DNA of 64,000 nt, taken from contig JAUPSS010000004.1 of the NCBI GenBank assembly GCA_040285825.1, forward strand, positions 744,001 to 808,000. Direction: 5' to 3'. The stretch comes from Eukaryota sp. TZLM1-RC. Taxonomy: Eukaryota > Protista > Metamonada: BaSk clade. The notes under the pieces are model-generated. The model was not told the DNA's origin, did no database searches, and saw only the letters and a program-made list of their open reading frames with translations. Shown piece after piece: positions 34,201-58,100 of this stretch. Position 1 is the stretch's first letter; each line of letters starts with the position of its first letter. The position numbers and the translations under genes were made by a program.

Positions 34201-35392
34201 ATTGATTCCAATAAAAGATAAAATCCTTGTTACTATCCCATCATTCTTCCTTTACCACGCATTTCGTCTCACTCATTATGTCATTCACTCTTTCTTTTTA
34301 GCTTGCCTCTAATCTTCGTTCTTTACAGGGGCCCTTGACTCCAGAATTCAGCTCAACTTATTGATGCATTGACTCTTATATCTGTCTTAACTTTTGTTAC
34401 GTTCTTTATCCCTGATTTGTTTGTATCCATTGCTTTTCCATCACTTTAGTTGTTTTTCTCACACTGGGAATCGAACGCTGGACTAGGCTACAGTTTGTTA
34501 CTGGGCTGATTTGTTTATTATTTAAATGGTCAATAATCTTATCTTTTTAAATGCCATGTCAATTTGCCTCTTATCAAGGTGGTTATCGACTCAGTTCCTT
34601 TGTGTTATAATCCACAGTGTATTTATTAATCTACTATTTGTTCAAATCTTTTAATTTAATTAATTTATCCATTTCGTTTTTTATGAAATGGCCGATACAT
34701 GCTAAGTTTATTCTACGGGTTTGATTTTCTCTGCCTCTAGTTTACCCCAATTCCTTTTTTAGTGTGACGGTCATTTTTGTTTTGGATCTACCATCAATGT
34801 ATTTCTTCCTGAATTCAATGTTAATCTAGCAAAATTGGGTTTTATTTGAAAATTCCCAAGTAATTGCTGGCTGTTATTTAAACTTTATTTGCATTCTTTT
34901 CAAATTTTATAACGGCATTCTGTTTATTTTTTGTTTTAGTTATTTGCAATTTTCAACGAAACAACCTTTACTCATTTTAATAAGATTTGGAACTTTGATT
35001 TTTCTGTAGTTTTTAAGAATTGTTTGATTTTCAATGTTAATTTTTTATTCTAACAACATGTTTTTTTTCAGTCATTGCTTAGTTATTCACAACTTTCAAA
35101 AGTGTCTCTACCAAATATTGGGAGTAATTCTCTTTATTTAGAGTCTCTATTCATAAACACAAACAAACTGAGTAATCATCAATCATTCAGTTTTTATTTG
35201 TTTGATGTTGATTACAGTCAAGAAAGATCTGATTACGTGTGTCCGTAAAGTCTACATGTTTTTGAATCTTTATTGGTTTTTGTTTTAAATTTAAACACCT
35301 GTGTAATTCACCTGTGGTCAATAATAGGTGAATTTTAATTCTCACCTCACAAATTTCTCACATCTTCTTTTTACTGTCCTTTATTCACTTCT

Positions 35393-36487
35393 ATGGGGGC
35401 CACTATCGACTTATTGTTGTCTGGTAATGATCTTAGGCTCCTCAAAGTACACGCTAGCGAAGACACAAAGATTCGTGCGGTGTACACCTTAGTCTTCCTT
35501 GAGAAAACACAACAAGACGTTGCTGAATACTACTGCGTTGCACAATCTACGGTATCGACTTGGTTACGCCAAGTATTTCCTAGTTCTGAATCTACTCCCA
35601 ATCCTACATCACGCAATCTCTTCCAAACTCCTTCATCTCGTCACAAACTAAACGAAACAGAGTCCTCATTTATCCTCCAACTTGTGAAAGAACAACCTCT
35701 CCTTTTTTTACGCGAAATAGGTAAGCTAGTTTTTACAAAATTTCGCAAGAAAGTTAGTGTAACAACTGTGCACAGATTACTAATCAAAAACAATTTTACT
35801 CACAAAAAATGTGCTAATTTGATGAGACGTGCCAAAAAAGAACTGATTCATAACTTTGAATTAAGTTTTCGAAGACTTTTTGGTGTTGTAATTCAACAAC
35901 AATTATTATTTATTGACGAAGTTTCGTTTAAATCAGAACACTTTGTAAGAAAAACTTGTTGGAGCCCTAAGGGAGTTCCAATTAATACTGAAAGACCGAA
36001 CTTCAAGGAAGGGCAGGTGAGTCTCATGGTGGCAATTGTCAATGGGCTAGTGATGTTTCATATTAAACAAGGTCATTTTAATCGCACAGGATATGTAAGT
36101 TTTCTACAAGATTTACTACATCATAAATTATTATCAATTGAAGGAGGAGCTAGATCAATAGTGGTTGTTGATGGTTGCAATATTCATAAAAATGCATACA
36201 TTTTCAGGGCTGTAAAATTGGCTGGCTTAAAATATTTGATTTTACCACCGTATTCTCCTGATTGTAACCCAATAGAAGCGTTTTTTGGTCTGCTTAGAAG
36301 AAAAGTCAGAGACAATTCGTTACACAGCCCACTGCAAGGTGTTAATCTTTTGCAGCAGCTATTACGTACAATGATTTTCAATTGCAGCAATTTATTTGAC
36401 CATAGTGGCTGGGAGGATTTTTGCCCATTCAGATCGCCATACTTGCATGGTATAAAGGCAAACTTTTTCAAAGATCATTTGGATTGA
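35393..36487 (+). CDS. IS630/Tc1-like DD34E transposase
   Basis: HTH regions, FIDE, VVDGCNIH, LPPYSPDCNPIE. 34 residues between the second D and the E. Confidence 0.93.
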   Translation: MGATIDLLLSGNDLRLLKVHASEDTKIRAVYTLVFLEKTQQDVAEYYCVAQSTVSTWLRQVFPSSESTPNPTSRNLFQTPSSRHKLNETESSFILQLVKEQPLLFLREIGKLVFTKFRKKVSVTTVHRLLIKNNFTHKKCANLMRRAKKELIHNFELSFRRLFGVVIQQQLLFIDEVSFKSEHFVRKTCWSPKGVPINTERPNFKEGQVSLMVAIVNGLVMFHIKQGHFNRTGYVSFLQDLLHHKLLSIEGGARSIVVVDGCNIHKNAYIFRAVKLAGLKYLILPPYSPDCNPIEAFFGLLRRKVRDNSLHSPLQGVNLLQQLLRTMIFNCSNLFDHSGWEDFCPFRSPYLHGIKANFFKDHLD

Positions 36488-36600
36488 ATAAAGTTTTGAT
36501 TAAAAATGTATTAAAAATAAAACAGTTTTAATTGATTATGTATTGAAAATAAAAAAAAAAGAACTTTTATCATCAAAAAACCAATACTATTGTACTACTA

Positions 36601-37398
36601 TTAATCAGTATGCTGAGTGTCTTCCGCAGCAGCCACTCTTTTGAAAGCTTCATTTACGTCACTGGATAAGGCAGCTTCTGAACTAGTTCTTTTACCCAAG
36701 CTGATAACAAAACAATTTAACTTCTTGAGAAAAGTAGACTCAAGTACATCAAGTAATTCAAGTACTTGTTCTCTAATCTTGAATAATTGAGCGGCTGAAT
36801 ATTGAGCTACCTGTTCAGCCAATTCAACCGAAAACAGATTGTTTTTTGCATCACCCAGAAAGGGTATGATGGACTCAGGAATCCTGGTGATGCTTCCCTT
36901 TCCCTCGTTGATTATCTCCAACCAAGTGTTCCACAGGTGGTCAGCAAGTACCACCTTTGAATTGGCTGGGTGTGATTTCAATTGTTCTATCGTTATAGTC
37001 TCTATCTCTTTCTTCTCCTTGTCCTTCAACCAAGCGTCGTAAAACTTAACATTAATCTCTTGCTGGGGACGGACTTGAACAGAGAAAGCAGGAGCATTTC
37101 CACCAGAATTTGAAGAAAGCCAATTCTGTAGACAGGCAGCAGTTCTAGAACCAAAATTTCCGGTAAGCTTGTAGGCTACTTCGAGAGTGGTGTCAGGATG
37201 TACAACTTTTTTATTCTTCTTAGCTTCCGCTGCAAAATGTTCAGTGAAGAGAGAAGAGAGTAATTCAGGGGTGACTGTTTCAACGTCTTGGTATAGAAGA
37301 CCGATGGTAGTAGCACCAAAACGTCGAGTTCCAAATACTAGATAGTAATAAAGTTGGATTTGTACGGAATTGGGTGTACCAGATGCAACTAAAGACAT
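36601..37398 (-). CDS. Transposon accessory protein of unknown function, 265 aa
   Basis: Intact ORF convergent with the transposase. Similar by eye to 41429-42445. Confidence 0.8.
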   Translation of the reverse strand: MSLVASGTPNSVQIQLYYYLVFGTRRFGATTIGLLYQDVETVTPELLSSLFTEHFAAEAKKNKKVVHPDTTLEVAYKLTGNFGSRTAACLQNWLSSNSGGNAPAFSVQVRPQQEINVKFYDAWLKDKEKKEIETITIEQLKSHPANSKVVLADHLWNTWLEIINEGKGSITRIPESIIPFLGDAKNNLFSVELAEQVAQYSAAQLFKIREQVLELLDVLESTFLKKLNCFVISLGKRTSSEAALSSDVNEAFKRVAAAEDTQHTD

Positions 37399-37553
37399 AA
37401 TATTTATGAAAGTGAATGAAATGTGAGGTGAATGTGAAAGAGGGAGTGATATCTATTTGAGATGAAATTCACAGACGCAATATTAGAATTAACTTTTTAA
37501 GGAAATGTTGATTGTTATTTTTCAATTAAAATACTAGAAAACCAAAAACTGGC

Positions 37554-37916
37554 CTAACCAGCAGGAAAAGAAAGTGTCATCAGCTTAGCTAACAGAGGTT
37601 GGCTAGGTGGTACATACGTCAAATCTTGATGAATGGGAAAGTCACAGCCAAGGAGAATAAACTCCAGGGTTTCAAAGATAGTGTCAAATTGATAGTGGTC
37701 TGTTTTCTTCGTCTCGTGTTTCTTTTCTTCCTTCGGCAGGGATCTTGATAAGTAATCAGCCCCATGATTACTAGGTCCATCCACATGGGCACAGTCGAAT
37801 GACAATGACTGTAGGACTGAGATCCAACGGATCACTACAAGGTTTGAGTCAGGGCAAGATAGCATTAATGAGAGGTTGTTATGGTCACAAAACAGGGTCA
37901 GATGTCTTGTTTTCAA
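37554..37916 (-). pseudogene. Ty3/Gypsy RNase H fragment
   Basis: LFCDHNNL..VIRWISVLQSLSFDCAHVDGPSNHGADYLSR. Confidence 0.75.
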
Positions 37917-38762
37917 AAATGAGAAAAGTGAACAAATGAGGAATCAACCAGCGTTGTTGTGTAGGCGTCAGAATTTTGAATAAAATGACAAAGGTGCTAC
38001 AGTTCAAAAGTTGGATTTACAAACGATGTAGGAAAAGAGTGGTTGGTGCCGTTGACACTTAGAATATTGATATATGATATTCTAATATTGTTGTTTTTAT
38101 TAGCCTAAAAGTTATTCCTCTATTATTTTATATTTTATTATAATCAACTTGATGTTGAAATTTTCTTGAATCCATATGTTTTTTTTTAAAATTGGCCTTT
38201 TTACCTTGTAAGAAGCGTGATTTGTCCAACTGTAGTGTGTTTTTGATAAGTAGTCGATGTACACTTGTCACACTATTTTTCGTCTAAAACATTGTGGAAA
38301 CAAGGTTATGCATTTCACGTAGAAAAAGCAGTGGATCTGCTTTTACAACCTGAAGAATGAAAAATATCATTTTTTCGTTGAGTTTCTGAGGTGATGACGT
38401 AAGTTGGTTGATAAAGAGACAACATGTTGTAGGATTACACGTAGATTCTATTTTAGGTTGAATTTTTCATGGAAATAGACGTAACCAAGTCGAAATGGTT
38501 GATTGAGATACACAGCAGTATTCAGCAACCTTCGGTTGAGTTGTTGTGCAAGAAGACTAAGGTGTAAATCGCACGAATCTTGGTGTCCTCGCTTACATGT
38601 ACTTTCTGGTGTCTATTATCAATTTTTTTTCATTCTTTTGTTGAAGTTCACAAAGTTGACAATGAGCTTATACTTGGCTCTGCAGACAATTTTCTGGAAC
38701 TTTTTGTATGTGTATCCGTGATTAACAAGAGTTCAAAGAATAGTTGATATAGAGACTGTTAT

Positions 38763-39038
38763 GTGTCTAACGTCCTGAAGAATGATTTCTCTCAAGTTGA
38801 GCAGCCGCTGTTCATTGACAAGAGCAAAAAGGAATCAACATGGCACGTTGACAAGACCCAGTTCTGTACATTTTTCGGTCTTGCAAAAGACTACATGATG
38901 GTTCAAGCTACTTCTGTAGCTTCTGAGCAATTGTTGTCTGCCTTAGGAAGGATTTGGAGTAAAGATCGAGTATCACTCGGTGATAATGGTGTTTTGGGTT
39001 GCTTTTGTTCCAACTTGTCTGGTGGAGTAGAAGGATAG
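38763..39038 (+). pseudogene. hAT dimerisation-domain relic
   Basis: LAKDYMMVQATSVASEQLLSALGRIWSKDRVSL. Confidence 0.65.
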
Positions 39039-39120
39039 AAACACACCAAGGATGGTGGCTTCAAATTGTTGCAAGCTCAGTATTTCACATTGATTGTTGA
39101 TAGGAAAAATAATTTAAAAA

Positions 39121-39932
39121 GGGATAATTTTTTTATACCATTCATTCAAAATTGTTTTTGTACCACTTTTTGAAATGATATAGAAAATCACTGCACGTTT
39201 TCATGACTATAATTGGTTTTCTACCATGGTGAGATTCTGATTGATTGACACTGATCTCTTTTCTCTGTCTGTAATGATATTATCCTATGATATTATCCTA
39301 TGTTCCCTGATTGAATCGAGTTCTTCTCGCGCTTTGACGTTGTCGATCTTTTGCAGCGCTACAAGATAGTCTGCTTCGTTTACAGCCTCTGCTGCTTGCC
39401 TTATATAACCTTCCAGGCCTTTTTGCTAGTAATGTTTGCAGAAGTTTGCACAGAAATGTATCAGACAGTAAGCATGCGCTACATCATTTTCAAACACCTC
39501 AGTTTTTAAAATACAGTTTTTAAAATAGACGGGTGGCGATCAGACACAATAACAAGATGAGGTTCTTTTAGGCTTTGCTTCTATAAAGATAGAAAATATT
39601 TCCAGTTGACATCCTTTCAATATCAACAATCGCATACGCAAGAGGGAACAGTTGTCCTTCTAACAGTCTTAACAGAGAATTCACAGGACATTTGGCAGCA
39701 AGAAGCTCGACATCGTAATTTGTCACTATGAGTGTATTTGATCTCACGTCTTACAAGAAGACTGACGTGTATAAGTTGTAGTTGAAAGCTTTTCTTATCC
39801 TTGAATGTAGACTCTTTCTTCAAGGAAGCGATATTTAAAGAATACATTATAGAGCAGCAGTAGTATAAAAACAATTATGATGGTATGAAAGTAATTCTGG
39901 AAGTCCTTTAATGGTACAAAACTAATTTTCCC
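39121..39932 (-). mobile_element. Non-autonomous MULE deletion derivative
   Basis: TIRs GGGATAATTTTTTATACCA / GGGAAAATTAGTTTTGTACCA, flanked by tttaaaaa on both sides. MuDR DBD-like ORF at 39623-39874. Confidence 0.75.
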
Positions 39933-40327
39933 TTTAAAAAACCATTTTTGCAAAAATGTTTATATTATTAAAATGAATCAAGCACAAAGTTTGCAGCATT
40001 TGTGGTGTTTCCCTTAGGAAAAATTAAGTTTTAAACTGCTGATCGATGCTTGAAATGCCGAATAGCCGTCAATTACCATCCTCCCATAAAAATACCTTAG
40101 GAAATACAAATGCTTTGCTGAATATTATGATAATAACGAAAGCACATGTAAAAGATGGAGACATGCCGTAATACCGTAATAGAGAAAAGTTGGATTGTGA
40201 AGGAGCTGACGATGGAGAGGAATGGCCACATAGGATGAGAGTGGGGTTTAGGACAAGTCCAACAAAAGAACCAACAGCAGGTATAAGGTAAAAATGAATC
40301 ACAGATGAGTAGAAAAACCGGTAGAAA

Positions 40328-41157
40328 GAGTGCAGGGGAGTCCTAAAGCTCGGAAAAGTAGGTAAGTGAGCGGAAAGTGTGCAAAGTACAGGGGGACTCC
40401 TAAAGCTCGGAAAAGTAGGTAAGTGAGGGAAATAAGAACCTAGTTTATGAAGTGAGGGGAAAGTGTGGAAAGTACAGGGGGACTCCTAAAGCTCGGAAAA
40501 GTAGGTAAGTGAGGGAAATAAGAACCTAGTTTATGAAGTGAGGGGAAAGTGTGGAAAGTACAGGGGGACTCCTAAAGCTCGGAAAAGTAGGTAAGTGAGG
40601 GAAATAAGAACCTAGTTTATGAAGTGAGGGGAAAGTGTGGAAAGTACAGGGGGACTCCTAAAGCTCGGAAAAGTAGGTAAGTGAGGGAAATAAGAACCTA
40701 GTTTATGAAGTGAGGGGAAAGTGTGGAAAGTACAGGGGGACTCCTAAAGCTCGGAAAAGTAGGTAAGTGAGGGAAATAAGAACCTAGTTTATGAAGTGAG
40801 GGGAAAGTGTGGAAATTACAGGGGGACTCCTAAAGCTCGGAAAAGTAGGTAAGTGAGGGAAATAAGAACCTAGTTTATGAAGTGAGGGGAAAGTGTGGAA
40901 AGTACAGGGGGACTCCTAAAGCTCCGAAAAGTAGGTAAGTGAGGGAAATAAGAACCTAGTTTATGAAGTGAGGGGAAAGTGTGGAAAGTACAGGGGGACT
41001 CCTAAAGCTCCGAAAAGTAGGTAAGTGAGGGAAATAAGAACCTAGTTTATGAAGTGAGGGGAAAGTGTGGAAAGTACAGGGGGACTCCTAAAGCTCGGAA
41101 AAGTAGGTAAGTGAGGGAAATAAGAACCTAGTTTATGAAGTGAGGGGAAAGTGTGGG
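40328..41157. repeat. 86-bp tandem repeat: 9 near-identical units (40385-41157) plus a partial unit
   Basis: Unit agtacagggggactcctaaagctcggaaaagtaggtaagtgagggaaataagaacctagtttatgaagtgaggggaaagtgtggaa starts at 40385, 40471, 40557 ... 41073. Confidence 0.97.
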
Positions 41158-41428
41158 AATAGTGAAAACCTTTCAAACTTCAGTTGTGGGCTAAAAACCT
41201 GCCAGAACAGGCAACTAGAAGTCGAAAATGGGGTGATAAGTGTAAAATTTAATAGATAAGCTCATAATTCTCACTTTATACCAGAGGTTTCCTGTTTATT
41301 TTTGCTCCGATAATGTTGTCCAAAGTGTTAAAATTTACAATATTAAAGTAAACTGTGAGATTCACTTAAGGTGAATTCCCCTTCCAATTCCCACTTTCAT
41401 CCCTTTTTTTGTCTCTTCTACAAAATAC

Positions 41429-42445
41429 ATGTCTTTTCCTTCAGAAAACTACACCACACCTACAAAAAAATGCAATACTGACTTTAACGAGACTGACTGG
41501 AGTATTTATGATGATGTACTACCAATGCAGACCAGTCCAGTGCTTACCCCTTTCACTTCTTTACGTCCTACGCAACTCACCTATGAAACAAGGCAAGCAG
41601 AAACATTGGAAGAAACAGTTTCTTCAGTTCCAGACACATCCACTTCTATAAATGTTGACTCTTTCAGTTGGTCCAACATGGATAACTGGACACAACGTAA
41701 GTGTATATTTTGCTATGCAAAATATAAGTCCTCTGCCTCTTATTTTTATGAAGAGGAAATGGGGTTTTGGTTCAACAACAGTGATGCTCGTCTCAATGAA
41801 TTTGTTAAGTTTTTATCTAGCCATTTTGTTGAACAGGCTAAAGTTAACAAAACATACTTATTTACTACTGATTTGTTGATCGTAGCCAAAAGAACAGCTG
41901 CCACTAAGAATTGGAAGTCTCTAACAGATTCAGTCTTTCAAAAATGGCTGAAAGATGATAATAACTGTTTGATCAAAGTGTTTCCCAACATGGATAAGTC
42001 TCAATACGAACTCCATTTAGAAAAGCACAGGTTGAAAATAGCTCGTGCTATAAGCATTGACAGTCTACAACAACTTCATCCCAATTTGGCTTTGTCTACT
42101 CAAGGATGGGTGTTGTTTAAAACTCTTTATGAAAATAATAAGCTAAATGATTTGAGTGTTGTGCCAGCTGCTGTGTTGAAGTTTCGATTACTCAAAGATT
42201 TGTCAGAAAACACTACTAAAACTAAGACTGAAGAACAGATTATCCAATTTATTGGTAAAAAAAGAATACAGTTGAAAGAAGATCTGGCCAATTATGAAAA
42301 GGTTTTATTAAAGAAAATGGATATCGAAATTGCAGAATTTATTCGCTCTTTACTTGTCTCACCTCCCTGTCCAACTGAACTTTCAGAAGATGCGGAGAAA
42401 CTTTTTAATTGTGCAGCAAATGTAACTGATCCGCATATGTTCTAG
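41429..42445 (+). CDS. Transposon accessory protein of unknown function, 338 aa
   Basis: Intact ORF convergent with the transposase. Similar by eye to 36601-37398. Confidence 0.82.
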   Translation: MSFPSENYTTPTKKCNTDFNETDWSIYDDVLPMQTSPVLTPFTSLRPTQLTYETRQAETLEETVSSVPDTSTSINVDSFSWSNMDNWTQRKCIFCYAKYKSSASYFYEEEMGFWFNNSDARLNEFVKFLSSHFVEQAKVNKTYLFTTDLLIVAKRTAATKNWKSLTDSVFQKWLKDDNNCLIKVFPNMDKSQYELHLEKHRLKIARAISIDSLQQLHPNLALSTQGWVLFKTLYENNKLNDLSVVPAAVLKFRLLKDLSENTTKTKTEEQIIQFIGKKRIQLKEDLANYEKVLLKKMDIEIAEFIRSLLVSPPCPTELSEDAEKLFNCAANVTDPHMF

Positions 42446-42525
42446 TATTAGTTTGAAATTATCATAAAAATTCCGTTTAATTGTAAGTCATACGAGTATT
42501 TATATCATCAACAAATGTGGTAATT

Positions 42526-43605
42526 CTATTCGACATAGACGGCTAGTTTCGGATTAGACAAATAGGGTGATTTATAACACTCACCATGAACCCATCCTGC
42601 CCTCTCAAATAATGAAGAACTATTGTATTTACGTAAAGATTCGAGCGATGACATAATGAGTTGGGTAGCAGGAGCTTGTGGGTAAAGTTGTGCCTCCGTT
42701 CGAACTTTTTTGCGTAATATAGCAAAAAAAGTTTCAATTGGATTAGACTCAGGTGAGTATGGTGGCAATATCAAATATCTTAGCCCAACCTTACGAACTG
42801 CATAAAAAATTTCAGGTCCAGTATGGATTCTACATCCATCCAATACCAAAACAGATCTGTTTCCTGGAAATCTGTGTGTTATTCCAGATTTAATAATATC
42901 TTTTAAAAAACCAATAAATTCATGACGGTTAAAATGGCCTTCTTTCATATGACCCGTAACATAACCCCATTGATCCATACACACAACCAAAGAGATTTGC
43001 TTTGCATTCATTTGCTTAACTGGAATAATAACAGGTTCACCTTCAGGTGACCAACCAGCCTTACGACAAAAATGTTCTTGCCTGAATGATAGTTCGTCAA
43101 TGAACAATAATTGTGAATGAACCACAGTTCCTATTAGATTAGTAAATAAGTTTTCGAAATTTTCAATTAACCTCCTTTTACAGTGTTTGACCAGTTTGGA
43201 TGCCACTTTGTGAGTGTAACCAGCATTGATCATCACCCTTCGAATTGTGCTGAGGGAAACATATTTACCAAATAGATACATAGTCTTCTGTTGCATTTGA
43301 TATAAAAAAAGCTGTGGATGTTTGTCAACAAGCTGACATAATATATTGATTTCCTTTTGGCTTATAATGCGGGTTCGTTTGCGTTTGTATGGGCCCCACA
43401 GATCAGGATTGATAGCTTGGTTTAGCCAGCGTGACAGAGAAGATTGTGAAGCTCCGAATAGAAGTACTACCTCAGACTGTGAAAGAGATTGGAAGTAAAA
43501 TGCAGCACATGCTCGAGATCGAGTGTCCTCAGACGCGTGAAGTTTTATAGACAACAGCTGACGGAGAGAATTGATGTTTGAAAGAATTTCAAAGGTCAAA
43601 GGCAT
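42526..43605 (-). CDS. IS630/Tc1-like DD34E transposase
   Basis: HASEDT, FIDE, VLDGCRIH, LPPYSPESNPIE. D34E spacing. Confidence 0.93.
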   Translation of the reverse strand: MPLTFEILSNINSLRQLLSIKLHASEDTRSRACAAFYFQSLSQSEVVLLFGASQSSLSRWLNQAINPDLWGPYKRKRTRIISQKEINILCQLVDKHPQLFLYQMQQKTMYLFGKYVSLSTIRRVMINAGYTHKVASKLVKHCKRRLIENFENLFTNLIGTVVHSQLLFIDELSFRQEHFCRKAGWSPEGEPVIIPVKQMNAKQISLVVCMDQWGYVTGHMKEGHFNRHEFIGFLKDIIKSGITHRFPGNRSVLVLDGCRIHTGPEIFYAVRKVGLRYLILPPYSPESNPIETFFAILRKKVRTEAQLYPQAPATQLIMSSLESLRKYNSSSLFERAGWVHGECYKSPYLSNPKLAVYVE

Positions 43606-43727
43606 CTCAATAAGTCAGAAACACAAAAAAGGGATTAGGGAGGGAAGGGAATAAAAAGGGATTTGTATTCAACCTAAAATTCAACCACAGAAGCTTAAAG
43701 TACAGTAGTTTATTTCTGAAAAAATTA

Positions 43728-46700
43728 TATTTTCTACGAAGAAACAAAACAAAACAAAACAAACTAAAACACAAAATTCTAAAAAAAAAATTCTAAGAAA
43801 CAAAATTCTCCACGCCAACTCTTGATGAATCTTATACAGCTTGGACATCATTCAATTCAAGTACTTGGGAACACTTCTGTACAAAGCAAAAATGATACGA
43901 TTCTTCCATAAAGTCCCTGCAAAATTCTTACCACTTGAACGACATAAATTACCAAAATCATTGAGAAAATTCAAGGCAGACTGTCCAATGTTGCCAAAAA
44001 TCGAAAAGGCAAAAGGAACAAACGAAAACTTCGAGTAAAGAATCATATTTAAATCATTTAATATCTCAGTATATTTGTCCCTTTTACGATCCTCAGCCTT
44101 GTTTAAATGACCATGAGAACTAAGTAAAACATCATCACGATAAAAAAAAGCAAAAGGATCAACTGTAGTAAAATCAACAACAAGTTGAGAGGAATCCACA
44201 AAAGGAGCAATTAAATCACCTTGACGTGAAGTAAACATATTATTATCGCTATAATGCTTCAACAACGGTTCTACTTTGCAACTAAAATTGTAACACTTAA
44301 ACATCTCATATGTCACATCACGAACGGCATTATGAAGAACTGACCGATATTGAAGGAATTTCTAACAACTAACAATATGACGGAAATTGACAGTAGGTTT
44401 TTCGTTACAAATAAAAACAGAATTATCCAAAAGACCACTTGGATACAGCCCTAATCTCAAACGTTTTGTTTCCAAGCTTCATTTGTTAAGTGAAGACCAA
44501 ATGGCCTTGGTTGCTGAGATATTAAACTAGTGCAATTCTGGATATCTGATAAAAAGGCAGCAAAGACGGGATTATTAATCTTAGTCACACTAAGTCGTTT
44601 AGAGAAATCCAGGTTTTCAAAACGAGTTAAAACAGACTTCTGTAATTTCACAACAGCAAGATGAAGATTAGTCAAAGATCTCGAAGGTACAGAAGGCAAA
44701 CTTGAAGGAAAACACTTATTCCACACATCAACAGGTAGTTCCTGCACCATGTTTTCAAGCGAAATTAATAAAGGATGTGATTCATTCAAAGGAATATGAT
44801 CAAAACGAAGTTTCCACTCAAAAAGAAAATTTTCCATACCACCAATAAAAGCACTTTTGCATAAATACTCTGCTTTTGACAAACCAACTCCACCAAATTT
44901 AGGACTAAAAAATGCATGATAAGGAATTTTTGATGGACAAACCCACTAAATCTCCTAAGAAATTGGTTCTCAGAGTATTAAATTGACGTGCAAAATCATG
45001 AGAAATTGTGGGGGATAAAGAACGAAGAAGGTGATTAATTTTTGATCCAAAACACACATTCAGGACCGAAAACGCTAAATGCTTGTCAATTTTTAGTTCT
45101 TGAATAGCTAAAAGTTGCTTTTCAATTTTTCCCGAAATACCTGACAAAATCGATTTAACTTTTTCACAATTTCCAAAATAAGAGCCAAGAAAACGAATCG
45201 CATCTGGGTCATTTGCAAAATCCAACCTCTGCCAATATCAGTTTTCAAAATCAAACCTCTGTCAATTTCAATTTTCAAAATCCAACCTCAAATGCATTTG
45301 CATTTTCAAAATCCAACCAGAAACACTTGTTAACACGAAATCAATTGATTTATTATTGATTCAGATCCCTGCTACAGTTATTTGCTTTATGACCTTCTTG
45401 ACCACACTTTGAACACCGATATCTTCGTTTTTCCTTCGTGTCTTTTCTTGGATTTGGGCACTGGGGAGCTCTATGACCTGACATCAAGCAGTTGCCACAG
45501 CGATAACTACGCTTTTTTGATGCAAAAGTCTCTGCTTCACCTTCATCTTGATCTCTCGTTTGTTCAATAAAGTCATGTGTATATTCTTCTGGTACTGTTT
45601 CATATCTTGTTTCTTCAGTAAAGACTTTCTGGTTTCCATTCACAGTTCCAACACCTTGTGTTTTTTCAATAATGTTTTATGATAAGCCATCGGTCTTTGT
45701 AGACGTTTAGATATGTTTATTGGGGAAAGTACTCCCTCTCGCTGCAATACAGGAACTAAGGCCTCTCCAAAATAATTAGCTGGTGGTTTTGGTCGTGTTT
45801 TTGCATTGCAATGTACCTGATGATCGGTGAAAACAGTGATGACCCAGTCATTGCTCTGGTCCTGTTGAGAAGCCCATAAGTGGAAAGGACAATCAGAATC
45901 GGAGCAATTAATAGCATATCTAATGGTGTTGTTTCCCTTGAAAGGTACGAACTGCTTGTTCATTTGCAGGGCGTATTTCCAAACCATATATCAGCTCGTT
46001 CTTGTTGGGAAAGGAATCACCCACTTTCAATAAGATGGTTGTGGCATAGGTTGATTGTGTTGGATCTTCCATGGAATACAGTTTGTTTTTAGGTAATGTT
46101 TGAAAGATATGGAAATGGGAATTGCTTGTTTTTGAAAAGGTAAATGGGTTTGTTTGATGCAATTTTCCCATCGCATCTTCCTCATAATCAACATATTTGA
46201 TAAAAGTTTCATTAAATGCTGTCTCAACATTCTGATTACCAATAATGAAACACTAGGGCAATTTAATATCTAACCCTATTTGTTGGGACAGAATAACGAA
46301 ATGTTGTAACCCTTGCTGTAAAAGAGACAAAGGACCGATAAGTGATAAATCATCTGCATAAGCACATATATGAATGTCAGTAAAATCCGACTTAAATTCT
46401 ACTAAAACTGATTGCAGTGCTAAGCAAAAGAAAAATGGACCCAATGGATCCCCTTGTTTGACACCTCTTGACGAAACAATATTCTCAGAATGAAAAATTA
46501 GGTTAGAGGGTGATCCATACATCAATTTAAAATACGGCAAAAGTGGAGGATAATGTAGTTCAAGTTCTTGTAAAATACTTGAGCGAAAAACCGAGTTGAA
46601 AGCATTTTGAAAATCAATATTCAGTAAATAATTTTCGCCTTTTTGATTGACAAGTAAATTTGTACACAAGGCAGCACAAGTTGCGCCATCAGTAATTCCA

Positions 46701-46728
46701 ATAGCAAACTGATAAGGACGAAAAAAAA
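43728..46728 (-). mobile_element. 5'-truncated CRE family A copy with a 14-bp TSD, interrupted by a MULE
   Basis: TSD ttctgaaaaaatta at 43714-43727 and 46729-46742. ORF pieces are close paralogues of 869-2850. Confidence 0.92.
45206..46169 (-). mobile_element. Internally deleted MULE nested in the CRE copy
   Basis: 9-bp TSD atcgcatct at 45197-45205 and 46170-46178. GGG...CCC imperfect TIRs. Retains MuDR DBD (VGDSF..CSDSDCPFHLWAS) and two CCHC knuckles; no DDE core. Confidence 0.9.
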
Positions 46729-46742
46729 TTCTGAAAAAATTA

Positions 46743-46761
46743 ATTATTTTAGTTATCCCTG
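46743..46761 (-). mobile_element. hAT terminus (continues at 43691-43727 and left of 41353 once nested elements are removed)
   Basis: Reverse complement CAGGGATAACTAAA. The subterminal aagcttaaagta motif also occurs at 50930-50970. Confidence 0.65.
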
Positions 46762-47011
46762 CACCTCTGTGTCAATTCAACTAAGTAATGTTTACCAGTG
46801 TTACGAAGCTTACCGGAGACTTCTCACTCTCCTGACTCTTTTTGTTCCAATGTCTTGATCAGGTTGATTTGAGTTTTTGGATCACAAAACTGTCAGCCGG
46901 TTGTACCAAATGCGTATCATTTTTTTGGCAAATAAACTAATAGTACATTCAGGTTCTTCAAAGCCTTTTTCAAATCAGATTTCTGTTGGTGACAAAGAGC
47001 ATTGTCGCAAA

Positions 47012-47950
47012 TAGGGTTCGGAATTTACGATATTACGTAACATTACGTAATTACAGAAAATACGACCTTACCTAATTACGGTAGAAGGAAACGTGTATGA
47101 TGTACATGATAATCTAGTAGAAACTGGTCTGCAAACTATCTTAATGAAATAGTTTCGATTGTCAGAGCCGGATTTCATGCTTTTTTATTCATACAGACCT
47201 TCAAAAAGACTAAAACTAACATAAATTAAACAAAAAACTTTCGTAACGATGATATAAATAAGTCAAATGAATGACAAAAAAGGTTCAGATTCGTGGTTTG
47301 AACTGGAATCTTACAATTCTTCTATTTCAACACCTTCATCCAACACTTCTCCAGGTTCATCTTCCTCAACGCAAAAAGGAACTGACCCGTTGGCTACTTT
47401 TCCTCTTATTTTTCTTAGAAGCTCAAGGTTTTGGAACAAGAAAACAAGGTTATCAACGGTGGAAGTTGCCAATCTGTTACGTAGCTTTGAATGTATAAAA
47501 GTAAAGTTGAGAAGTTCCGTTCACTAGCGCTTGATTAAAGAGGATGTCCCATCACTTTTCTTGCAATTATCCTAAGATTCGAACAGTCACTTATTCCTTT
47601 CCACCAAATCACACCAGAAATTTTGGCTCTGCTATTCCAAACATTCTCATTACCAAATAATCCGTTACGATTTTGATAGCTCATATATTCACTATAAGCT
47701 TCATGGTCTTTACCTGGCATTATCGAATAAAATGCAGTGACAAGAGCAGTTATCTCAGTAGCAGTTGTTTTGTAATCGTGATGTATTGTATTCAGTAGAA
47801 AAGCTCAATATGGACGTCTTTGACAGCTTTCTTAATCCTCACATCCAAAGTGTTGTGGAAAAAGGATATTCTCGTTTGGAACTTTTCGACACTTACTTAC
47901 GTCTGTAGAGCTGCCAATCAAGTTGTTTTTGATACGAGTTGAGTTAACTA
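47012..47950 (-). mobile_element. Degenerate hAT element, 3' portion
   Basis: TAGGGTT terminus-like start. Minus strand reads WWKG..LRIIARKV and SSASERNFSTFTFIHSKLRNRL. Confidence 0.65.
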
Positions 47951-48440
47951 CAAAAGTCTCAATCATCAGCTCTCTCGTCCCTTAGATATTATACGAGTGA
48001 AGATACTCGAGTTAGGGCACTTTATACAGTGTTTTTCCTTGGTCGAACCCAAACCGAAGTTGGTCAACTGTTTTGGGTGTACCAAACGACAATTTCGAAG
48101 AGGGTACATGATCTTTTTGAACCCAACAATAATTTAACAACTTCAAGATGTTTTTTGACAGACGCAGATGGTGAATTTCTGAACCATCTATTGGACACCC
48201 GTCCCCTTCTTTTTTTAAGAGAGATTAAGACTATTTTGGAAATTCATTGAAATAAACAAGTATCGGTTTCAATCATACACAGATTTTTGGTAGAGAAAAG
48301 AGATTTCACCCGTAAAAAAGCACGGATCGTTGTGCAAAAAGCCAAAGCAGAACTCATTCACAGTTTTTTTCAATTATTTTCGTCGTTATGGATGGATGTC
48401 GAATTCATCAGCATGACAGTATATCAAAGGGACTTAACGC

Positions 48441-51012
48441 CAGGGATAACTAAAGTGGTAAAGTACTTTAAGCACTTTACTTTACTTTACTTTACTTTTC
48501 TTTACTTTAAAGAATCTTTTTTTGATAAAGTAGAGTCATCATTATTTGGTTTGACAAACATTTTGTACATTTTAATAGAGAACATTCTATTTACGAAATC
48601 CTCTTCAAGTAAGGTAACTTTTCAATTCACCATAAGATAACAAAACCTAACATTTATTCAGAAACTCATCAAAAACTGATTGAAAAATTAAGTATGTGGT
48701 GGATGAGCACCAACACTCTTCTACTAATGGATCTCAATTACATCTTCATCGGATGACACCCCGCTACTTACTTCCAACTCATCAGGTTCATTGGGGACAT
48801 CTGCACCATTCAGCCGGTCCCAATACTTCTTTGAACTACTTCTTCCTCCTCTGACGTAATGCTTCACCATCACACTATCTGTTGCCCTCTGACTTTCCAT
48901 TTTGTTTCTTTCTTGTGTACATACAATACGAAAGTCCGACCAGTTTCTTTCAGCTTCTGAGTTTGATGTCACCATACTTAACAGTCTCACTGCCAGGTTA
49001 GATAGCTCAGTGTTACCGCCATGAACATACCACCATTCATGTGCTGCCATTCTGGAAGCTATGTTGAATAGTTCACTGTGTTCGAATAAATCTGACCCTG
49101 CAACATAACAAGACCATTGATGAATGATGTCTGCCTTTTTTGCCCGTCCAAATTGTTCTTCAATCACTCGAAACAAAGCATCACGACACTCTTGAAATTG
49201 TTGTTCTGTAATTAAATCCCTAAATTCAGGATCCAAACAAAAAGCCGCCCGATGATAGTCGTTGAAGATTTGCAAAATTCTGAATTCAAATCTCTGAAGA
49301 AGTAGACTGTGTTCTTCTTCTGATATAAATGATAGTTGAGTGAGATCCATTCTTTCTTTTTGCATTTGTAGATAGCGATACAGTTTGCCCATAATTGGTG
49401 TCAAACTATCAATTCTTTGCATGATATTGACAAGTGGTTTCATGAAGTCCACCAATTTTTCTACTTTTGTCCAATAGTTTTCATTGGCTAAAATTCTCTT
49501 TACGTCACAGGATTCCTGACGTAAACCCCGTTGTTCGGGGAAGGATAGCCATCGGACATACTCTTCATGAGTCAAGGTATGGGCTATAAATGGATAAAGC
49601 TCAACTACTCTTTCCAACACAAGAAAATGTGTATAGAACCTTGTAGTGGCTATTCGTTTCAACTTCTTTGTTGTAGAAACTTTTCGCATGAGCTTCTTAA
49701 TAAATGGTTTTAGAACGAACGTGACGACTTTAATGGCAGGTACGATCAACTGGCATATAGAGTCTATCTTGAATTGTGAATTCACTTCTAAAATATCTTT
49801 CATAAAGGAATTCAAAGTGTGAATTGCACACCTGAGTCCTTTGACTTTTACCATATTGAATAAATTATTGGCAGCATTAAGATAATTTGGAGCTGCATCA
49901 GTTATCACACAATTGACCAAATCAGGGCCGATTTCTTGAATTGTTGTTTCAAATAAATTGGTGAGATATGTTTCATTCTTTCGATTGGTCTCCGCATCGA
50001 CAGCTTTCCAGAAAATTGATTTCCCTGGAGCAATCAAACAAAAATTGATTAAAGAATTGCCATTTACTTCAGAACCATCTATTGCCAGGCAAAATCCTGT
50101 CAATTTGTGTTGGGTGAGTTGTTTTTTAATTCCGTCTTTTACACTAATGACCACTCGTGGTCCCACATATGACTGTAATTTGGTGTAAGAAGGTAATTGA
50201 AAAACTTGTCCATATAACTGAAAATGCTCAACTGATTTATCTATCAAGTCTTGTAGCAATGTTCCACTACTAACTTTCGTTAGAGGGAGACCTTCACTAA
50301 AACAGTACGTTGCAGCCATGTCTTCCAGCATCTTCGTGTTCAACCGCTCTTAAGTCTTCTTCAAAGTGAGTTGATGAAGTGTTCTTTGGACAGTTGGTTG
50401 TTGACTGCCTGAAAAGAAGGGATTGTGAATCGTTGATGGAGTTGATGGATTCTGTGGTGTAGAAGGAGTTGATGGAGTCTGTGGTGTAAAAGGAGTAAGT
50501 GGAGAAGGACTTGAAAAGGACGGAAGTGCTTGTCTAGGAGCTGGACTATTGATACTGGAAGCTCGTCTTTTGCGTTGTCTAGAATGTGTAGCTAGATACA
50601 CTCGTAAGTCTGCAACCTTCTTACCATTGTTACTCTCAGGACACCCTATTTGGTTGCATAACGGTACCTGTCTTTTAGGTAGTAGGTCAGGTACATAATG
50701 CCCTTCCATTGCCCATCGGTTGACAGAATAGACCTCATCGCATAATAGACATTGAAAGCGCGCACAAGTCTTTGAAACAACTTCGTTGACTTGACAGACA
50801 TTCGTCCAAGCCTCACAAGGGAGTGAAGTCATTAACAAAAGGAAATATATAAGAAAAATGAAGTGAGAAAGGGGTGGAGAATAAAGAAAGAAGCGTTCAC
50901 TACTTTATACCACTTTAGCCAATTTTAGAGCTTAAAGCTTAAAGTTTAAAGTAAAGCTTAAAGTAAATAAAGTACTTTAATTTCATTTTTTGGACCACTT
51001 TAGTCATCCCTG
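48441..51012 (-). mobile_element. Complete hAT DNA transposon
   Basis: 18-bp TIRs CAGGGAT(A/G)ACTAAAGTGG. 8-bp TSD cttaacgc at 48433-48440 and 51013-51020. Confidence 0.95.
48724..50838 (-). pseudogene. hAT transposase (zinc-finger N-terminus, DUF659-like core, dimerisation domain) with one in-frame TAA
   Basis: LAIDG, VITDAAPN, CAIH, TRF, EAERNWS. ORFs 50350-50838 and 48724-50343 are in the same frame, separated by TAA at 50350-50352. Confidence 0.85.
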
Positions 51013-52354
51013 CTTAACGCAGTTGGTATAAAACAACTGATTTTACCACCCTATTGTCCTGAAATGAATCCAATAGAGGCTTTTTTAAAGATTGGAGAGC
51101 AAAAGTTCAGGAAATTTGTTATCATTCTTAATAAAATCAAAGCATGCATATTATCACTCATAGCCTCAAAAATTTGACATTGAAAAATTGTGCTGGACTA
51201 TTGAATCATGCAGTTTGGGTGGATGATGAAGTTTATAAAAATCCATACTTTTACAAACGTTCTCTATCAAAATACATTGAGTGAGTTTTTACTTGAATAT
51301 ACTTTTATCAACTTAATTAATAAGTTTATTAGTCACTTGTTTTGTAGTGTTTGGGTTAAAAATAAATAAATTTATTAATCTAAATGTGCAATGTCCTCAA
51401 CGTCTGGTACTATTGCGAAAAAATAAGACGACAAGTCTTTAAGCTCTTCAGGATCCCCAAGATCAAAAAAATCAGTCTTTATACATCGGCAGAAAGACCA
51501 CTTTCATAGTTCTTTATGAAACTACGACAAACCCTATATCTGTGCACATTGTGAAAAGCCACTTGTGAAGAAACATATTCAAAAACAAAGTTTATTAAAA
51601 ATCCATGTTGTAAACGAATTTTCAAACGATGACATCATCAAAAATTCAATATAAACAAGAAAATTTTGAAAAATAGATTAAACGGTAACGAGCTGCTTTT
51701 GACATTTGAAGGTAAAAATAATGATTGAGAAAACACAATTAAATCGCACGAATTGCCGAAAAGGGAAAGAAGACCAAAAAAAAGACATAAAGACAAAATT
51801 AGAGAAGTAAAGTTGAATGAATGTACTGAAAAATAGTTTGTCGAAGTCGCAGGCAATCACTCGAAATAATACCTGATAGGCCTCTCATCGGCGTTGATCT
51901 GGGCCAATCTAGGTTTAGTGGTTATTTCTTAAACGATAGCCAATGTGAAGTTATTCCTTGTCCAACAAGGTTGAGATTGATTTATAGACTATTTTAAAAG
52001 AAACTAATGTTTCGATCTGGCCAAATTCATGCTTAAAAAACGTCATATCATATCACAGCTGCGGAAAGACTCATGAAACTTCTAATTCTTAAACAATTTG
52101 TCCACTTTTCCGAAAATAATTCTAGCCCTCAGATGAAGTAGAGCTCTTCTAATGCTGGACCTTATGAAGATGGTACTCTGTTCTGGCGAGGAGCAGAACA
52201 TCAGGCTACATGCAAGGAATATTCCAAGGACTGCAGTGATTCACTATTCAACAGAATGTTATTTAGAGTGTTATTCAATCCGAAAAAGAGATTAATGAAA
52301 GGAAGTAGTAGTCTTGGTATCAAATCAGCCCTTTTACACAGTTCCCCGGGGAAC

Positions 52355-54182: not shown

Positions 54183-54890
54183 AGGAGAACTCGATGCTTT
54201 GTTTTCAACAACAACTAATTCCATACTTATGGAAGAAACTTTGGCAGAACACGACCTTACTGCACAGTTTCTTTCATCAAAAACGGTCAGAATGACCAAT
54301 GAACGCAATGATTTTGAGTTTCATCAGCGCCAGGACCTCTTTCGTCGCCACTTTTACCCACTTTTATGGTGACTTCAGGAAAGCGACCATCCTGCAACAT
54401 TTTATTCAAACAGCGACTAATTTTTGATTAATGTTTATTTGAAATCAAATGATTTTTCTCTTGAAAATACTGCTGTTCACTGTTTAAATAAGGGGACTTG
54501 AAATATTCCCATGAATTCCACCCCGACCCGTTAAACATAGGTTTACAAACAAACTTCATGCCCAACAGCACTGATTGTAATATTCAAATAGTATCAGCAA
54601 GACTTTGAGGTGGCCTATGATGTGACTCTGCAACAACCTTGTTTCGAAATTGTTTAAAAACTTTCAATAGAATTGTGATCGAATATATGCGGGAAAAAGT
54701 CCCTCAGGGAGGTTATCAATTCGTCTATTCATTCTCCTGTTGTCCCATCAGCTTCTTCTTCTTCAAGCTTCGACGAGTTAGAATTTATTTCTGAGACGAA
54801 CTCCACCCGAGCTGTCCATAAGCTGTTGTTCCGAAAAAAAGGTCGTCCCACTGGATCTTCAAGTACTTCACCAAGTTAGAAGATGGACGT

Positions 54891-55172
54891 TTGCAATGCA
54901 ACGATAAAAACTGCCGTCCCCATCACAAACCCTACTCTAGTATCACCGGAAATGGAACAATTTCCAGTCATCTTTGTCGACATCACCTAGCTTCTTTGGA
55001 GAACAACAAAAAGAAGAGATGCGAGTTTTATTTATCAGAAAAAAATCTACTATCTTTCGATTTGAGTAATGAGCCTCAGTCAGTCGACAAAGAATTGTCA
55101 GCCGAAGAAGCTGAACAACTTTCTCCAATCTTCTTTCTCAACTTCTTCTCCCTTGTTTCCACAAAGTTTTAG
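54891..55172 (+). pseudogene. BED zinc-finger relic (hAT N-terminus)
   Basis: CNDKNC..SSITGNGTISSHLCRHH. Confidence 0.5.
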
Positions 55173-58100
55173 ATGAAAATTAGTGTAACAAGTGAACATC
55201 GACTACGTATCAAAAACAACTTCACACACACAACAAATGTACACATCACGCTATCTACAAGGTAAAAAGGTCAATTTTTTCAAAAAAAAATAAAATATAA
55301 AATAATAGAGGAATAACTTTTGGGCTAACAAAAACAACAATATTAACAAATCATATATCAATATTCTAAGTGTCATCGAGACCAACCACTCTTTTGAAGC
55401 ATTCTCCTACATCGTTTGTAAATCCAACTTTTGAACTGATTCTATTGCCCTACCTCAAAACAAAAGAACTTATGTTCACAATCAAAGTCGATTCGACTAC
55501 ATTTACCAATTCAAAAAATTGTTCCCTAATCTTGGGAAGTGAGTGTCTCAATATTGTGCAACTTGTACGACCCAGCCAAAAGCTACAGTCAAGAATACTA
55601 CTGCTTATCATATTTATATGAAAATGATGAATCTCGACAAGCCCCGAAGAAAAGACAGACGGAAGAAGAGGCAGTGTAGGATTTAAAGCAAATAAACAAC
55701 AAAAATTCAAAAACATGTAGACTATACAGACACACGTAATCAGATCTTTCTTGACTGTAATCAACCTCAAAAAGTTAAAAACTGAATGATTAATGATTAC
55801 TCAGTCGTTGTGTATTTGTAAAACGAGACTCTAAATAAAGAGAATTACTCCCAATATTTGGTAGAGACACTTTTGAAAGTTGTGAATAACTAAGCAATGA
55901 CTGGAAAAAATATGTTGTTGGAATAAAGAATTAACATTGAAAATCAAACAATTCTTAAAAACTACAGAAAAATCAAAGTTCCAAAACTTATTAAAATGAG
56001 TAAAGGTTGTTTCATTGAATATTGCAAATAAATAAAACAAAAATAAACAGAATGCCGTCACAAAATTTGAAAAAAATGCAAATTAAGTTTGAACAACTGC
56101 CAGCACTTAGTTGGGAATTTTCCAAATAAAAACCAATTTTGCTAGATTAACATTGAATTCAAAAAGAAATACATTGATGGTAGATCCAAAACAAAAATGA
56201 CCGTCACACTAAGGAAGGAATTGGGGTAAACTAGAGGCAAAGAAAATCAAACACGTGGAATAAACTTAGCAAGTATCAGCCATTTCATAAAAAACGAAAT
56301 GGATAAATTAAATTAAATTAAAAGATTAGATAATTAGATTAATAAATACACTGTGGATTATTACAAAAGGAAACTGTTTCACTAACCACCTGAAAGACAA
56401 ATTAACAAGGTATTTAAAAAGATAAGATTATTGACCATTTAAATAATGAACAAATCAACCCATTTAGTAACAAACTGTAGCCTAGTCCAGCGTTCGATTC
56501 CCAGTGTGGGATAACAATTGAAAGTGATGGAAAAGCAATGGATACAAACAAATCAGGGATAAAGAACGTAACAAAAGTTAAGACAGAAATAGAAGACAAT
56601 GCATTAATAAGTTGAGCTGAATTCTGGAGTCAATGGCCCCTGTAAAGAACGAAGATCGGAGGCAAACTAAAAAGAAAGAGTGAATGACATAGCGAGTGAG
56701 ACGAAATGCGTGGTAAGGGAAGACTGATAAGATAGTGACAAAGAATGAATCTTTTATTGGTATCAATCAGGGATAACTAAAGAGGAAGCAGCATATACCT
56801 TATTGACAAAAGTCGCAAAGTAATTATGATGTAGATCTTTGTAAAGAAAAAGGAGACCGCAAATGATCTAGACATCTGTATCAACCTAGACACGTCATGC
56901 AAAGGTGAATCTTAAAGAGTGAATGTTGAAAAGTGAAAAGTGTTGATCAACCCTTACCCTCCACACCTCTCCTTTATCTCCTATGGAGGACACCTTTTCC
57001 TCTACATCACTGCAATGTGGTGTTTGTCTCAAGGAGGCCTTGCCCAAACTTGTTTCCCTTCCTTGTGGGCATAACTTTTGCACCATATGCTTCGTCAAAT
57101 GGTGTGAAGAAACATCCCGTTCCTGTCCTGTTTGCAGAGGGATGGTTCCGGACGTTCCCTTCAAGACAAACATTCTTTTAACAAAATGTTTTTCCTTTAT
57201 AAAAAAACTTGAACATGAACGATCTGATCTCTTATCGCAATTGACTTTAACTCATGAACAATCCACGAGGAAATGTGCAGAAATAGAAGAAATAGAGGAA
57301 GAAAAGTTCATCTTAAAGGGAAAATTGAACACAATGAGTAAAAAATTTGTTCAGTTTAAGAAAAACAATAATAATCAATCAAATAAATTAAAAGCTCAAT
57401 TGGTTAATGTTCATCAACAATTATGAGCAGCTCAAGCTCATCAAGATCAATTACAAGAACGTAATGAATTTCTTTCCACTGAACTTCAAAGAGCTCTTGA
57501 AGTTGCTGGTAGTTTTGAAGAATTAAACCAACAAGAAGCAAAGATTAAGGAATTGGAAGCTGAATTACAATGTTCAAAAACTTCAATCGGCGAACTTCAG
57601 CAAAAAAATGCTGAACTCCATGCTGCATTAAAAACCACGGACAATCAAAATCTTCGCAGAAAAGCTTCAATTTTCAATGAAGTGCCGTTAAAGAGACCAA
57701 ATATGGAATCATTTTGGGTCAATGAATCACAATCAAATTTTGATGAATTTTCTCAATGGGAAACTGAAGGTGTTCAAAAGTATGTTGTTTTGGAATCTGG
57801 ATTATTAGTTCATGCTGACTCAATGAAGAAGGACAATGAAGCCATAATTAATATGGAAAATGTACTGGAAGATACTAGCAGTCAACTTGATATTTACAAG
57901 TCAGAAATAGAATCATACAAAATTCAATTGGCTAATGCTAATCACCAGTTAACGGCAGCTGAAGCTGATCAAAATCAATTACAAGATCATAATAAAATCC
58001 TTTCCTCGGAGCTTGAAAAACTCCGTGATGAAAGTACTGCTATCTTTGCAAAATTGAGCCAACGAGAAACTCAGATTAAAGAATTGGAAGCTGATTTGCA

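Follow-up and report, generated by a model that had tools for sequence, protein, structure and literature searches.

The two-gene transposons described here were found in a stretch of 64,000 nucleotides from Eukaryota sp. TZLM1-RC (GenBank assembly GCA_040285825.1, contig JAUPSS010000004.1, positions 744,001 to 808,000 of the forward strand), which we call the window. The window contains two intact elements in which the gene for an IS630-type transposase is convergent with a second gene, whose product we call the accessory protein. The best explanation of the sequences is that they represent a family of autonomous cut-and-paste IS630/Tc1/mariner (ITm) transposons, 2.1-2.4 kb in length, restricted to Skoliomonas and carrying two convergent genes. 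The accessory has been inherited, mobilised and conserved together with the transposase. TZLM1-RC, which the NCBI taxonomy lists as an unclassified eukaryote, is Skoliomonas litria, a free-living anaerobic metamonad of soda lakes (PMC11603281), and its genome was reported in PMC11316075. The genome has a GC content of ~36%; the window is likewise AT-rich (~35% GC) and is crowded with transposon debris. Loci for comparison were sampled from three Skoliomonas genomes (TZLM1-RC, GEM-RC1 and TZLM3-RCL) and are referred to by number (L001 to L012).

Copy 1 (35299-37474, + strand) belongs to one lineage of the family, A, and copy 2 (41353-43690, given on the + strand), which has the opposite orientation, to another, B; both are complete two-gene elements. 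In copy 1, the 364-residue transposase Tnp1 (35393-36487, +; D175, D260 and E295) is separated by a spacer of 113 bp from the 265-residue accessory Acc1 (36601-37398, -), and in copy 2, the 338-residue accessory Acc2 (41429-42445, +) is separated by 80 bp from the 359-residue transposase Tnp2 (42526-43605, -; D170, D256 and E291). The transposases were assigned by their matches to Pfam DDE_3 and NCBIfam IS630 and the spacing of the triad, the accessories by open reading frame (ORF), homology and AlphaFold2 model. Both ORFs are intact in each copy and lie tail-to-tail. The gene starts are 76-94 bp inside the element termini, with the accessory start within 76 bp of the terminus in both copies, and as each gene starts less than 100 bp from an end, there is presumably an inward-facing promoter at each end of the element.

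The ends of copy 1 were placed by comparison with a second copy, L001, which lies on another contig with different flanks. The similarity ends exactly at 35299 and 37474, and the left end is therefore 13 bp outside position 35312, where the preliminary description of this DNA had put it. The left end of copy 2 is common to the second copy in L009. Both elements have CTGTG...CACAG at their termini, a related terminal motif being present in both lineages, and in copy 1 these sequences form part of an imperfect terminal inverted repeat (TIR) of ~15 bp, in which 12 of the 15 terminal bases are inverted. A second CTGTG occurs 13 bp inside the left end of copy 1. The elements are flanked by a 2-bp duplication that does not follow a strict TA requirement: AC lies on each side of copy 1 and likewise of L001, and AA on each side of copy 2. 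The GEM-RC1 copies L004 and L011 are flanked by TA on each side, at a boundary that is ambiguous there. When copy 1 and L001 are oriented alike, the flanking dinucleotide reads AC in one and GT in the other, which identifies it as duplicated target and not as element; that the dinucleotide is part of the element is ruled out for lineage A, as AC is found on opposite element ends in the two copies.

Two further features of the ends were noted at other loci. Just beyond the element end in L001 (L001:9899-9924) is a second terminus-like sequence, CTGTGGTTTTCATTTGAAATGCATA; it is similar to the right terminus of the L004 element from GEM-RC1 and suggests that the end of a related element, or the DNA adjoining it, received the insertion. 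In L004 (4918-4922 and 7036-7041), and also in L011, five to six further bases outside CTGTG/CACAG are common to the copies (TACTA and TAGTAG) and are mutually inverted; they could represent either a longer TIR in that lineage or a palindromic TAC-TA-GTA target.

Judged by its profile matches and its triad, the family transposase is a member of the ITm superfamily. The two window transposases match Pfam DDE_3 (E 5.6e-24 and 3.2e-22) and score 118.7 bits (Tnp1) and 110.5 bits (Tnp2) against NCBIfam IS630, for which the cut-off is 100; both have 34 residues between the second Asp and the Glu (DD34E) and share an N-terminal HASEDT motif. The claim that a DD34E transposase with this motif lies tail-to-tail with a second ORF thus holds for copies 1 and 2. 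Tnp1 and Tnp2 are 39% identical (E 6e-85). For an N-terminal paired helix-turn-helix (HTH) region of the DNA-binding type, Pfam gave sub-threshold matches only, to HTH_32, HTH_33 and HTH_Tnp_Tc3_2. Sleeping Beauty matches the family transposase at E 3e-4 only, in an alignment that spans the regions of the second Asp and the Glu, and the nearest transposases outside Skoliomonas have ~27% identity or less. The best of these, protein P0008 on a contig from an ENA metagenome (L010), lies in bacterial surroundings, with an IS3 element next to it and one half of an epimerase gene on either side; it is the sole such locus that was checked, and these surroundings prompt the question whether the Skoliomonas lineage is bacterial in origin.

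The second ORFs had been considered homologous by eye, and the comparison of Acc1 with Acc2 bears this out (25% identity over 221 residues, E 5e-9); the two are further joined through relatives in another species at E 1e-22 to 1e-33. The accessory ORFs of L002, L003 and L004 are homologous to both (E 1e-5 to 1e-33). The accessories are 260-400 residues long, with intact frames of 265-402 codons across lineages that share 14-33% identity, and the chance of a stop-free frame of at least 265 codons, estimated from base composition at this GC content, is ~5e-9 for each. Two tryptophans are among the conserved positions, as are those of an I-S-x-x-x-L-Q-x-x-H-P segment and of an F...(D/N)-x-H tail at the C terminus; the N-terminal extensions are variable and disordered, and a lysine in the first hairpin is conserved within lineage B only. 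The lineage A accessory of GEM-RC1 in L002 (6154-6564, -) has four tandem 27-residue repeats (NGFQSPTE.HHP.L.SSRSE.DPFLSS) after the conserved tail motif. The ratio of non-synonymous to synonymous substitution (dN/dS) in the accessory between recent copies, a comparison that the preliminary description had proposed, is 0.23 (9 changes) and 0.49 (28 changes), values that point in the right direction and are weak evidence, because copies decay neutrally after insertion.

No relatives of the accessory were found beyond Skoliomonas. The homologue searches together covered ~15 billion proteins, including a set of 5.8 billion and 1.84 billion cluster representatives, and the oomycete relatives that the preliminary description had suggested did not appear among the matches. 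In the set of 5.8 billion, the one match to Acc1 is annotated as a hypothetical protein of Eukaryota sp. TZLM1-RC, and the family profile returned solely Skoliomonas proteins from the same set. A phmmer search with Acc2 of the cluster representatives gave nine matches, eight of them from three Skoliomonas strains and the ninth weak, unnamed and in several stretches. The 15 accessory members match no family in Pfam or NCBIfam, even in a relaxed Pfam scan to E 10, in which there are scattered weak coiled-coil matches only and in which none matches PF00564 (PB1) or PF26130 (PB1-like). The earlier observation that RuvC and zinc-finger motifs are absent was confirmed, together with the absence of Myb/SANT domains, by the Pfam and NCBIfam scans, and the predicted fold is not that of RuvC; the accessory has no Cys/His pattern and no nuclease or DNA-binding signature. 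It is acidic, nine of ten proteins having an isoelectric point of 5.3-6.2 and the tenth 7.7. Derivation of the accessory from the transposase was also considered and is ruled out (hhalign probability 0.5%).

The association of the two genes extends well beyond the window. A convergent transposase, or a remnant of one, is present in 14 of the 15 accessory-bearing loci in the three genomes. Searching GEM-RC1 from the transposases gave L002, L003 and L004, all three with a convergent accessory ORF immediately downstream, and searching from the accessories gave L001, L005 (TZLM3-RCL), L006, L007, L008, both L009 elements and L011, each with a convergent transposase or remnant. Every full-length copy seen has the second conserved gene, and the family in this respect departs from the single-gene organisation that is the norm for ITm elements. 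Lineage A comprises copy 1, L001, L002, L004 and L011, and lineage B copy 2, L003 and L005-L009; each occurs in more than one species. For the six loci in which both genes are complete, the identity matrices of transposase and accessory are correlated (r = 0.89, exact Mantel 2/720), the accessory evolving about twice as fast (14-33% identity vs 37-51% for the transposase). The proposal that the accessory is under constraint with the transposase is thereby upheld, both by this co-divergence and by the presence of the pair in three species.

Close copies show that the pair is also mobile. The left-hand 405 bp of copy 1 and L001 are 99% identical and their right-hand 1326 bp 94.6%, copy 2 and the second copy in L009 are 96% identical, and L004 and L011 are 99.67% identical over 2125 bp that span both genes. 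Since two species have near-identical copies (94.6-99.7% DNA identity) in different places, the two genes move as a single unit, and the sequence comparisons indicate that it has transposed recently in both, making a 2-bp duplication without a strict TA. In L001, L006 and L009 (9365-10821), we observed derivatives whose transposase carries an internal deletion or a truncation. In L001, 475 bp of the transposase gene are missing and the accessory ORF is intact; the accessory frame is open in L006 as well, and in L009 it appears as two separately called genes. L006 and L009 hold copies of the truncated form that are 95.5% identical, so that the non-autonomous form has itself been mobilised.

AlphaFold2 models of Acc1 and Acc2 were built with the family alignment and have mean confidence (predicted local distance difference test, pLDDT) of 81 and 72, respectively, with cores above 88; residues 1-73 of Acc2 are predicted to be disordered, and its conserved core starts at about residue 79. 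The two models agree: a domain with the order beta-beta-alpha-beta-beta-alpha-beta is followed by a number of short helices, then by one of ~45 residues and finally by a short helix at the terminus. We are highly confident in the structural description, in which the predicted architecture combines a PB1-like beta-grasp domain and a helical region with a long coiled coil and, at the C terminus, a short conserved tail. In an exhaustive fold comparison with the Protein Data Bank (PDB), the highest-ranking entries for each of the models were PB1 domains (Z 6.8 and 8.0, 75-92 residues, root-mean-square deviation 2.5-3.6). Foldseek picked out a chain of the p40phox/p67phox PB1 heterodimer with a probability of 0.99 but an E of 0.025, and gave no match in the PDB at E <= 0.001 for either model. 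The accessory profile found coiled-coil noise only among PDB sequences. In the ESM Atlas, a feature search with Acc2 gave no usable match, the Atlas's own model of Acc2 being poor, and a shape search placed plant Mutator-like element (MULE) proteins with PF26130 among the nearest shapes, at TM-scores below 0.5. The predicted beta-grasp fold of the N-terminal domain is well supported; its PB1 subtype is tentative, because a Z below 8 counts as middling.

The accessory combines two modules of the kind that mediate oligomerisation or docking with a lack of catalytic and DNA-binding features, and on this ground we read it as a protein-protein adaptor that would be needed for the propagation of the element itself, a reading that we favour and would still place a little short of an even chance. 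In our model, the accessory would be a dimeric adaptor in which the beta-grasp domain serves as the docking module beside the coiled coil. It would bind the transposase or a host partner, most likely aiding propagation, and might link transposase molecules to one another, regulate them or connect them with a host factor. Its role would then resemble that of MURB in maize MuDR.

Several points weigh against such an adaptor: no match in fold exceeds a Z of 8, which is middling, there is no sequence match to Pfam PB1 or PB1-like, and the dN/dS values rest on 9 and 28 substitutions. The PB1 matches concern the N-terminal domain and not the helical and coiled-coil half of the protein, and the accessory in L012 has no transposase within 4 kb, in a copy that is frameshifted. 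A prediction of a Tnp1-Acc1 complex, run without the supplied family alignments, scored 0.03 and counts neither for nor against the adaptor.

The same conservation and linkage would be seen if the accessory acted against the host or tuned activity, as an anti-silencing protein (like VANC of VANDAL) or as a dose-dependent inhibitor that limits host damage. Evolution at about twice the rate of the transposase is what would be expected of a protein in conflict with host factors, and the variable, disordered N-terminal extensions and the lack of DNA-binding or catalytic features are in keeping with such a role; however, rapid evolution equally fits a loosely constrained adaptor, and we consider action on the host or as a regulator rather unlikely, if deserving of real weight. 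It is unlikely, in our judgement, that the accessory is an obligatory second subunit of transposition, a dimeric PB1-like/coiled-coil adaptor by which the transposase would be assembled at the ends and the target chosen. If this were true, it would explain the duplication of dinucleotides other than TA, and the IS630/Tc1/mariner superfamily would gain its first two-component system.

Another possibility is that an ancestral element once acquired a lineage-specific gene and has carried it since as a passenger with no contribution to transposition. This would account for the lack, in the protein searches described above, of any homologue that hints at such a contribution, and for the intact accessory in the transposase-deleted copies L001 and L006. 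A passenger without benefit should decay, however, and intact accessories are present in all three species and on both sides of the deep split between the lineages, co-diverging with the transposase. No stand-alone host copy was found in the loci sampled, the sole copy without a transposase (L012) being frameshifted, and the layout is compact and integrated, down to the accessory start so close to the terminus in both window copies. We regard a passenger as improbable. That the family, accessory included, has already been catalogued, for example in Repbase or Dfam, seems very improbable: RepeatMasker and RepeatModeler were applied in the genome paper (PMC11316075), but a full-text literature search, the scope of which did not take in those two repeat libraries, found no description of the family, the genome papers (PMC11316075 among them) do not discuss these elements, and NCBI labels all family members 'hypothetical protein'. 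That the second ORFs are not genes but frames that are open by chance or lie antisense is effectively refuted by between-species E values down to 1e-33, conserved motifs, a confident fold in two lineages and the ~5e-9 chance of each frame.

Among known systems, the element is placed by its transposase with the IS630-like DD34E branch of ITm, with which it shares the DDE_3/IS630 match, the DD34E spacing, short TIRs, a 2-bp flanking duplication and a length of ~2 kb, and from which it differs in having a second conserved gene and non-TA duplications in S. litria (AC, AC and AA). The closest working analogue, in layout and proposed role only, is MuDR of maize, in which the genes mudrA and mudrB are convergent. 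Both are two-gene DNA transposons whose second protein is lineage-restricted and lacks known domains: in MuDR, mudrA and mudrB lie inside TIRs that hold their promoters, and MURB, a helper without known domains whose host range is phylogenetically narrow, is needed for insertion and not for excision (PMC10401008). MuDR is, however, a member of the Mutator superfamily with a 9-bp target site duplication, whereas the Skoliomonas element is an ITm transposon with a duplication of 2 bp.

Among other DNA transposons of eukaryotes, PIF/Harbinger, with its Myb-like protein, and VANDAL, with VANC, encode a second protein that they need or use. The Skoliomonas accessory differs from these in having no Myb/SANT or other Pfam domain and in being acidic and not a basic DNA binder, and the transposase superfamily is different. 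TBE elements of ciliates hold several ORFs, the extra ones encoding a zinc-finger/kinase-like protein and a 22-kDa protein. The TBE/Tec elements, relatives of Tc1/mariner (10.1101/2025.03.17.643836), resemble the Skoliomonas family in that an ITm-type transposase travels with extra ORFs; these show no similarity to the accessory in any protein search. Elements that carry Fanzor/TnpB are different again, as the accessory is predicted to consist of a beta-grasp domain and helices, with no RuvC and no zinc finger. For the N-terminal beta-grasp domain, PB1 is the best structural match in two independent models; PB1 domains, and the PF26130 domain of plant MULE proteins, are set apart by the lack of a sequence-level match, a Z of at most 8 and an Atlas TM-score below 0.5.

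The window also holds decayed relatives of the two intact elements. A third copy with the same layout had been proposed at 47985-51480, and its transposase remnants are real; the remainder of the claim holds only in part, as the remnants are split by a hAT element and the accessory is reduced to a C-terminal stub that escapes detection, which makes it no clean example of the layout. The 5' part of the transposase (47966-48441, +), found with the family hidden Markov model (HMM) on the six-frame translation and with tblastn, is decayed and covers profile positions 10-152 and then 246-267, with an internal deletion between them. The 3' part (51013-51284, +), found by the same means, includes the NPIE region of the catalytic Glu, with the HMM match at 51013-51224. 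Between the two halves lies a hAT-type element (48442-51012; ORFs 48724-50838, -), which was recognised by Pfam and by this position and is not of this family. It has an ORF of 539 residues with DUF659 and hAT dimerisation domains according to Pfam (48724-50343, -) and a second ORF of 162 residues that is Cys-rich and proline-rich (50350-50838, -).

The sequence EDIAHLD with a stop after it (51378-51398, -), located by motif search and translation, may represent the last residues of the copy 3 accessory and is not statistically detectable. It is 93 bp from the end of the copy 3 transposase, a distance consistent with the layout, and three positions conserved in the family can be aligned with it by eye; the frames upstream are broken, and neither the family HMM nor tblastn with 22 family members detects a copy 3 accessory. 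An accessory body to the right of 51398 was sought and found neither with the HMM nor with tblastn.

A better third remnant of the layout is provided by two convergent fragments further along. One is a transposase fragment of a fourth, heavily deleted element, found by tblastn (55125-55229, +; residues 102-137, 61% identity), and the other a C-terminal accessory fragment with stops, seen by tblastn (E 4e-12) and translation (55357-55533, -; 46% identity to residues 207-265 of Acc1). The region around 55125-55533 is jumbled, and further short fragments of the family transposase occur at 54446-54658 (-) and 55840-56027 (-). A lineage A transposase remnant at 38170-38834 (-), identified by tblastn and the family HMM, has 59-79% identity to Tnp1 in pieces and no detectable accessory. 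Outside the family, a run of ORFs at 44450-46700 (-) resembles a non-LTR/retroelement remnant by eye, with two CCHC zinc knuckles (45353-45643) and a YADD reverse-transcriptase-like segment (46253-46669).

The host is a little-studied protist, and the role of the accessory is read from its architecture only. The IS630/Tc1/mariner elements are the textbook transposons that need only their own transposase, and hence cross kingdoms and serve as gene-transfer tools. A lineage that has retained a second element-encoded protein beside its transposase over such deep divergence, and in which the TA requirement is relaxed, would break this transposase-only rule. The accessory represents a new protein family with no relatives found beyond Skoliomonas and, if its tentative assignment to the PB1 subtype is correct, would place a PB1-like module in a transposon protein for the second time, the plant MULEs having provided the first example.

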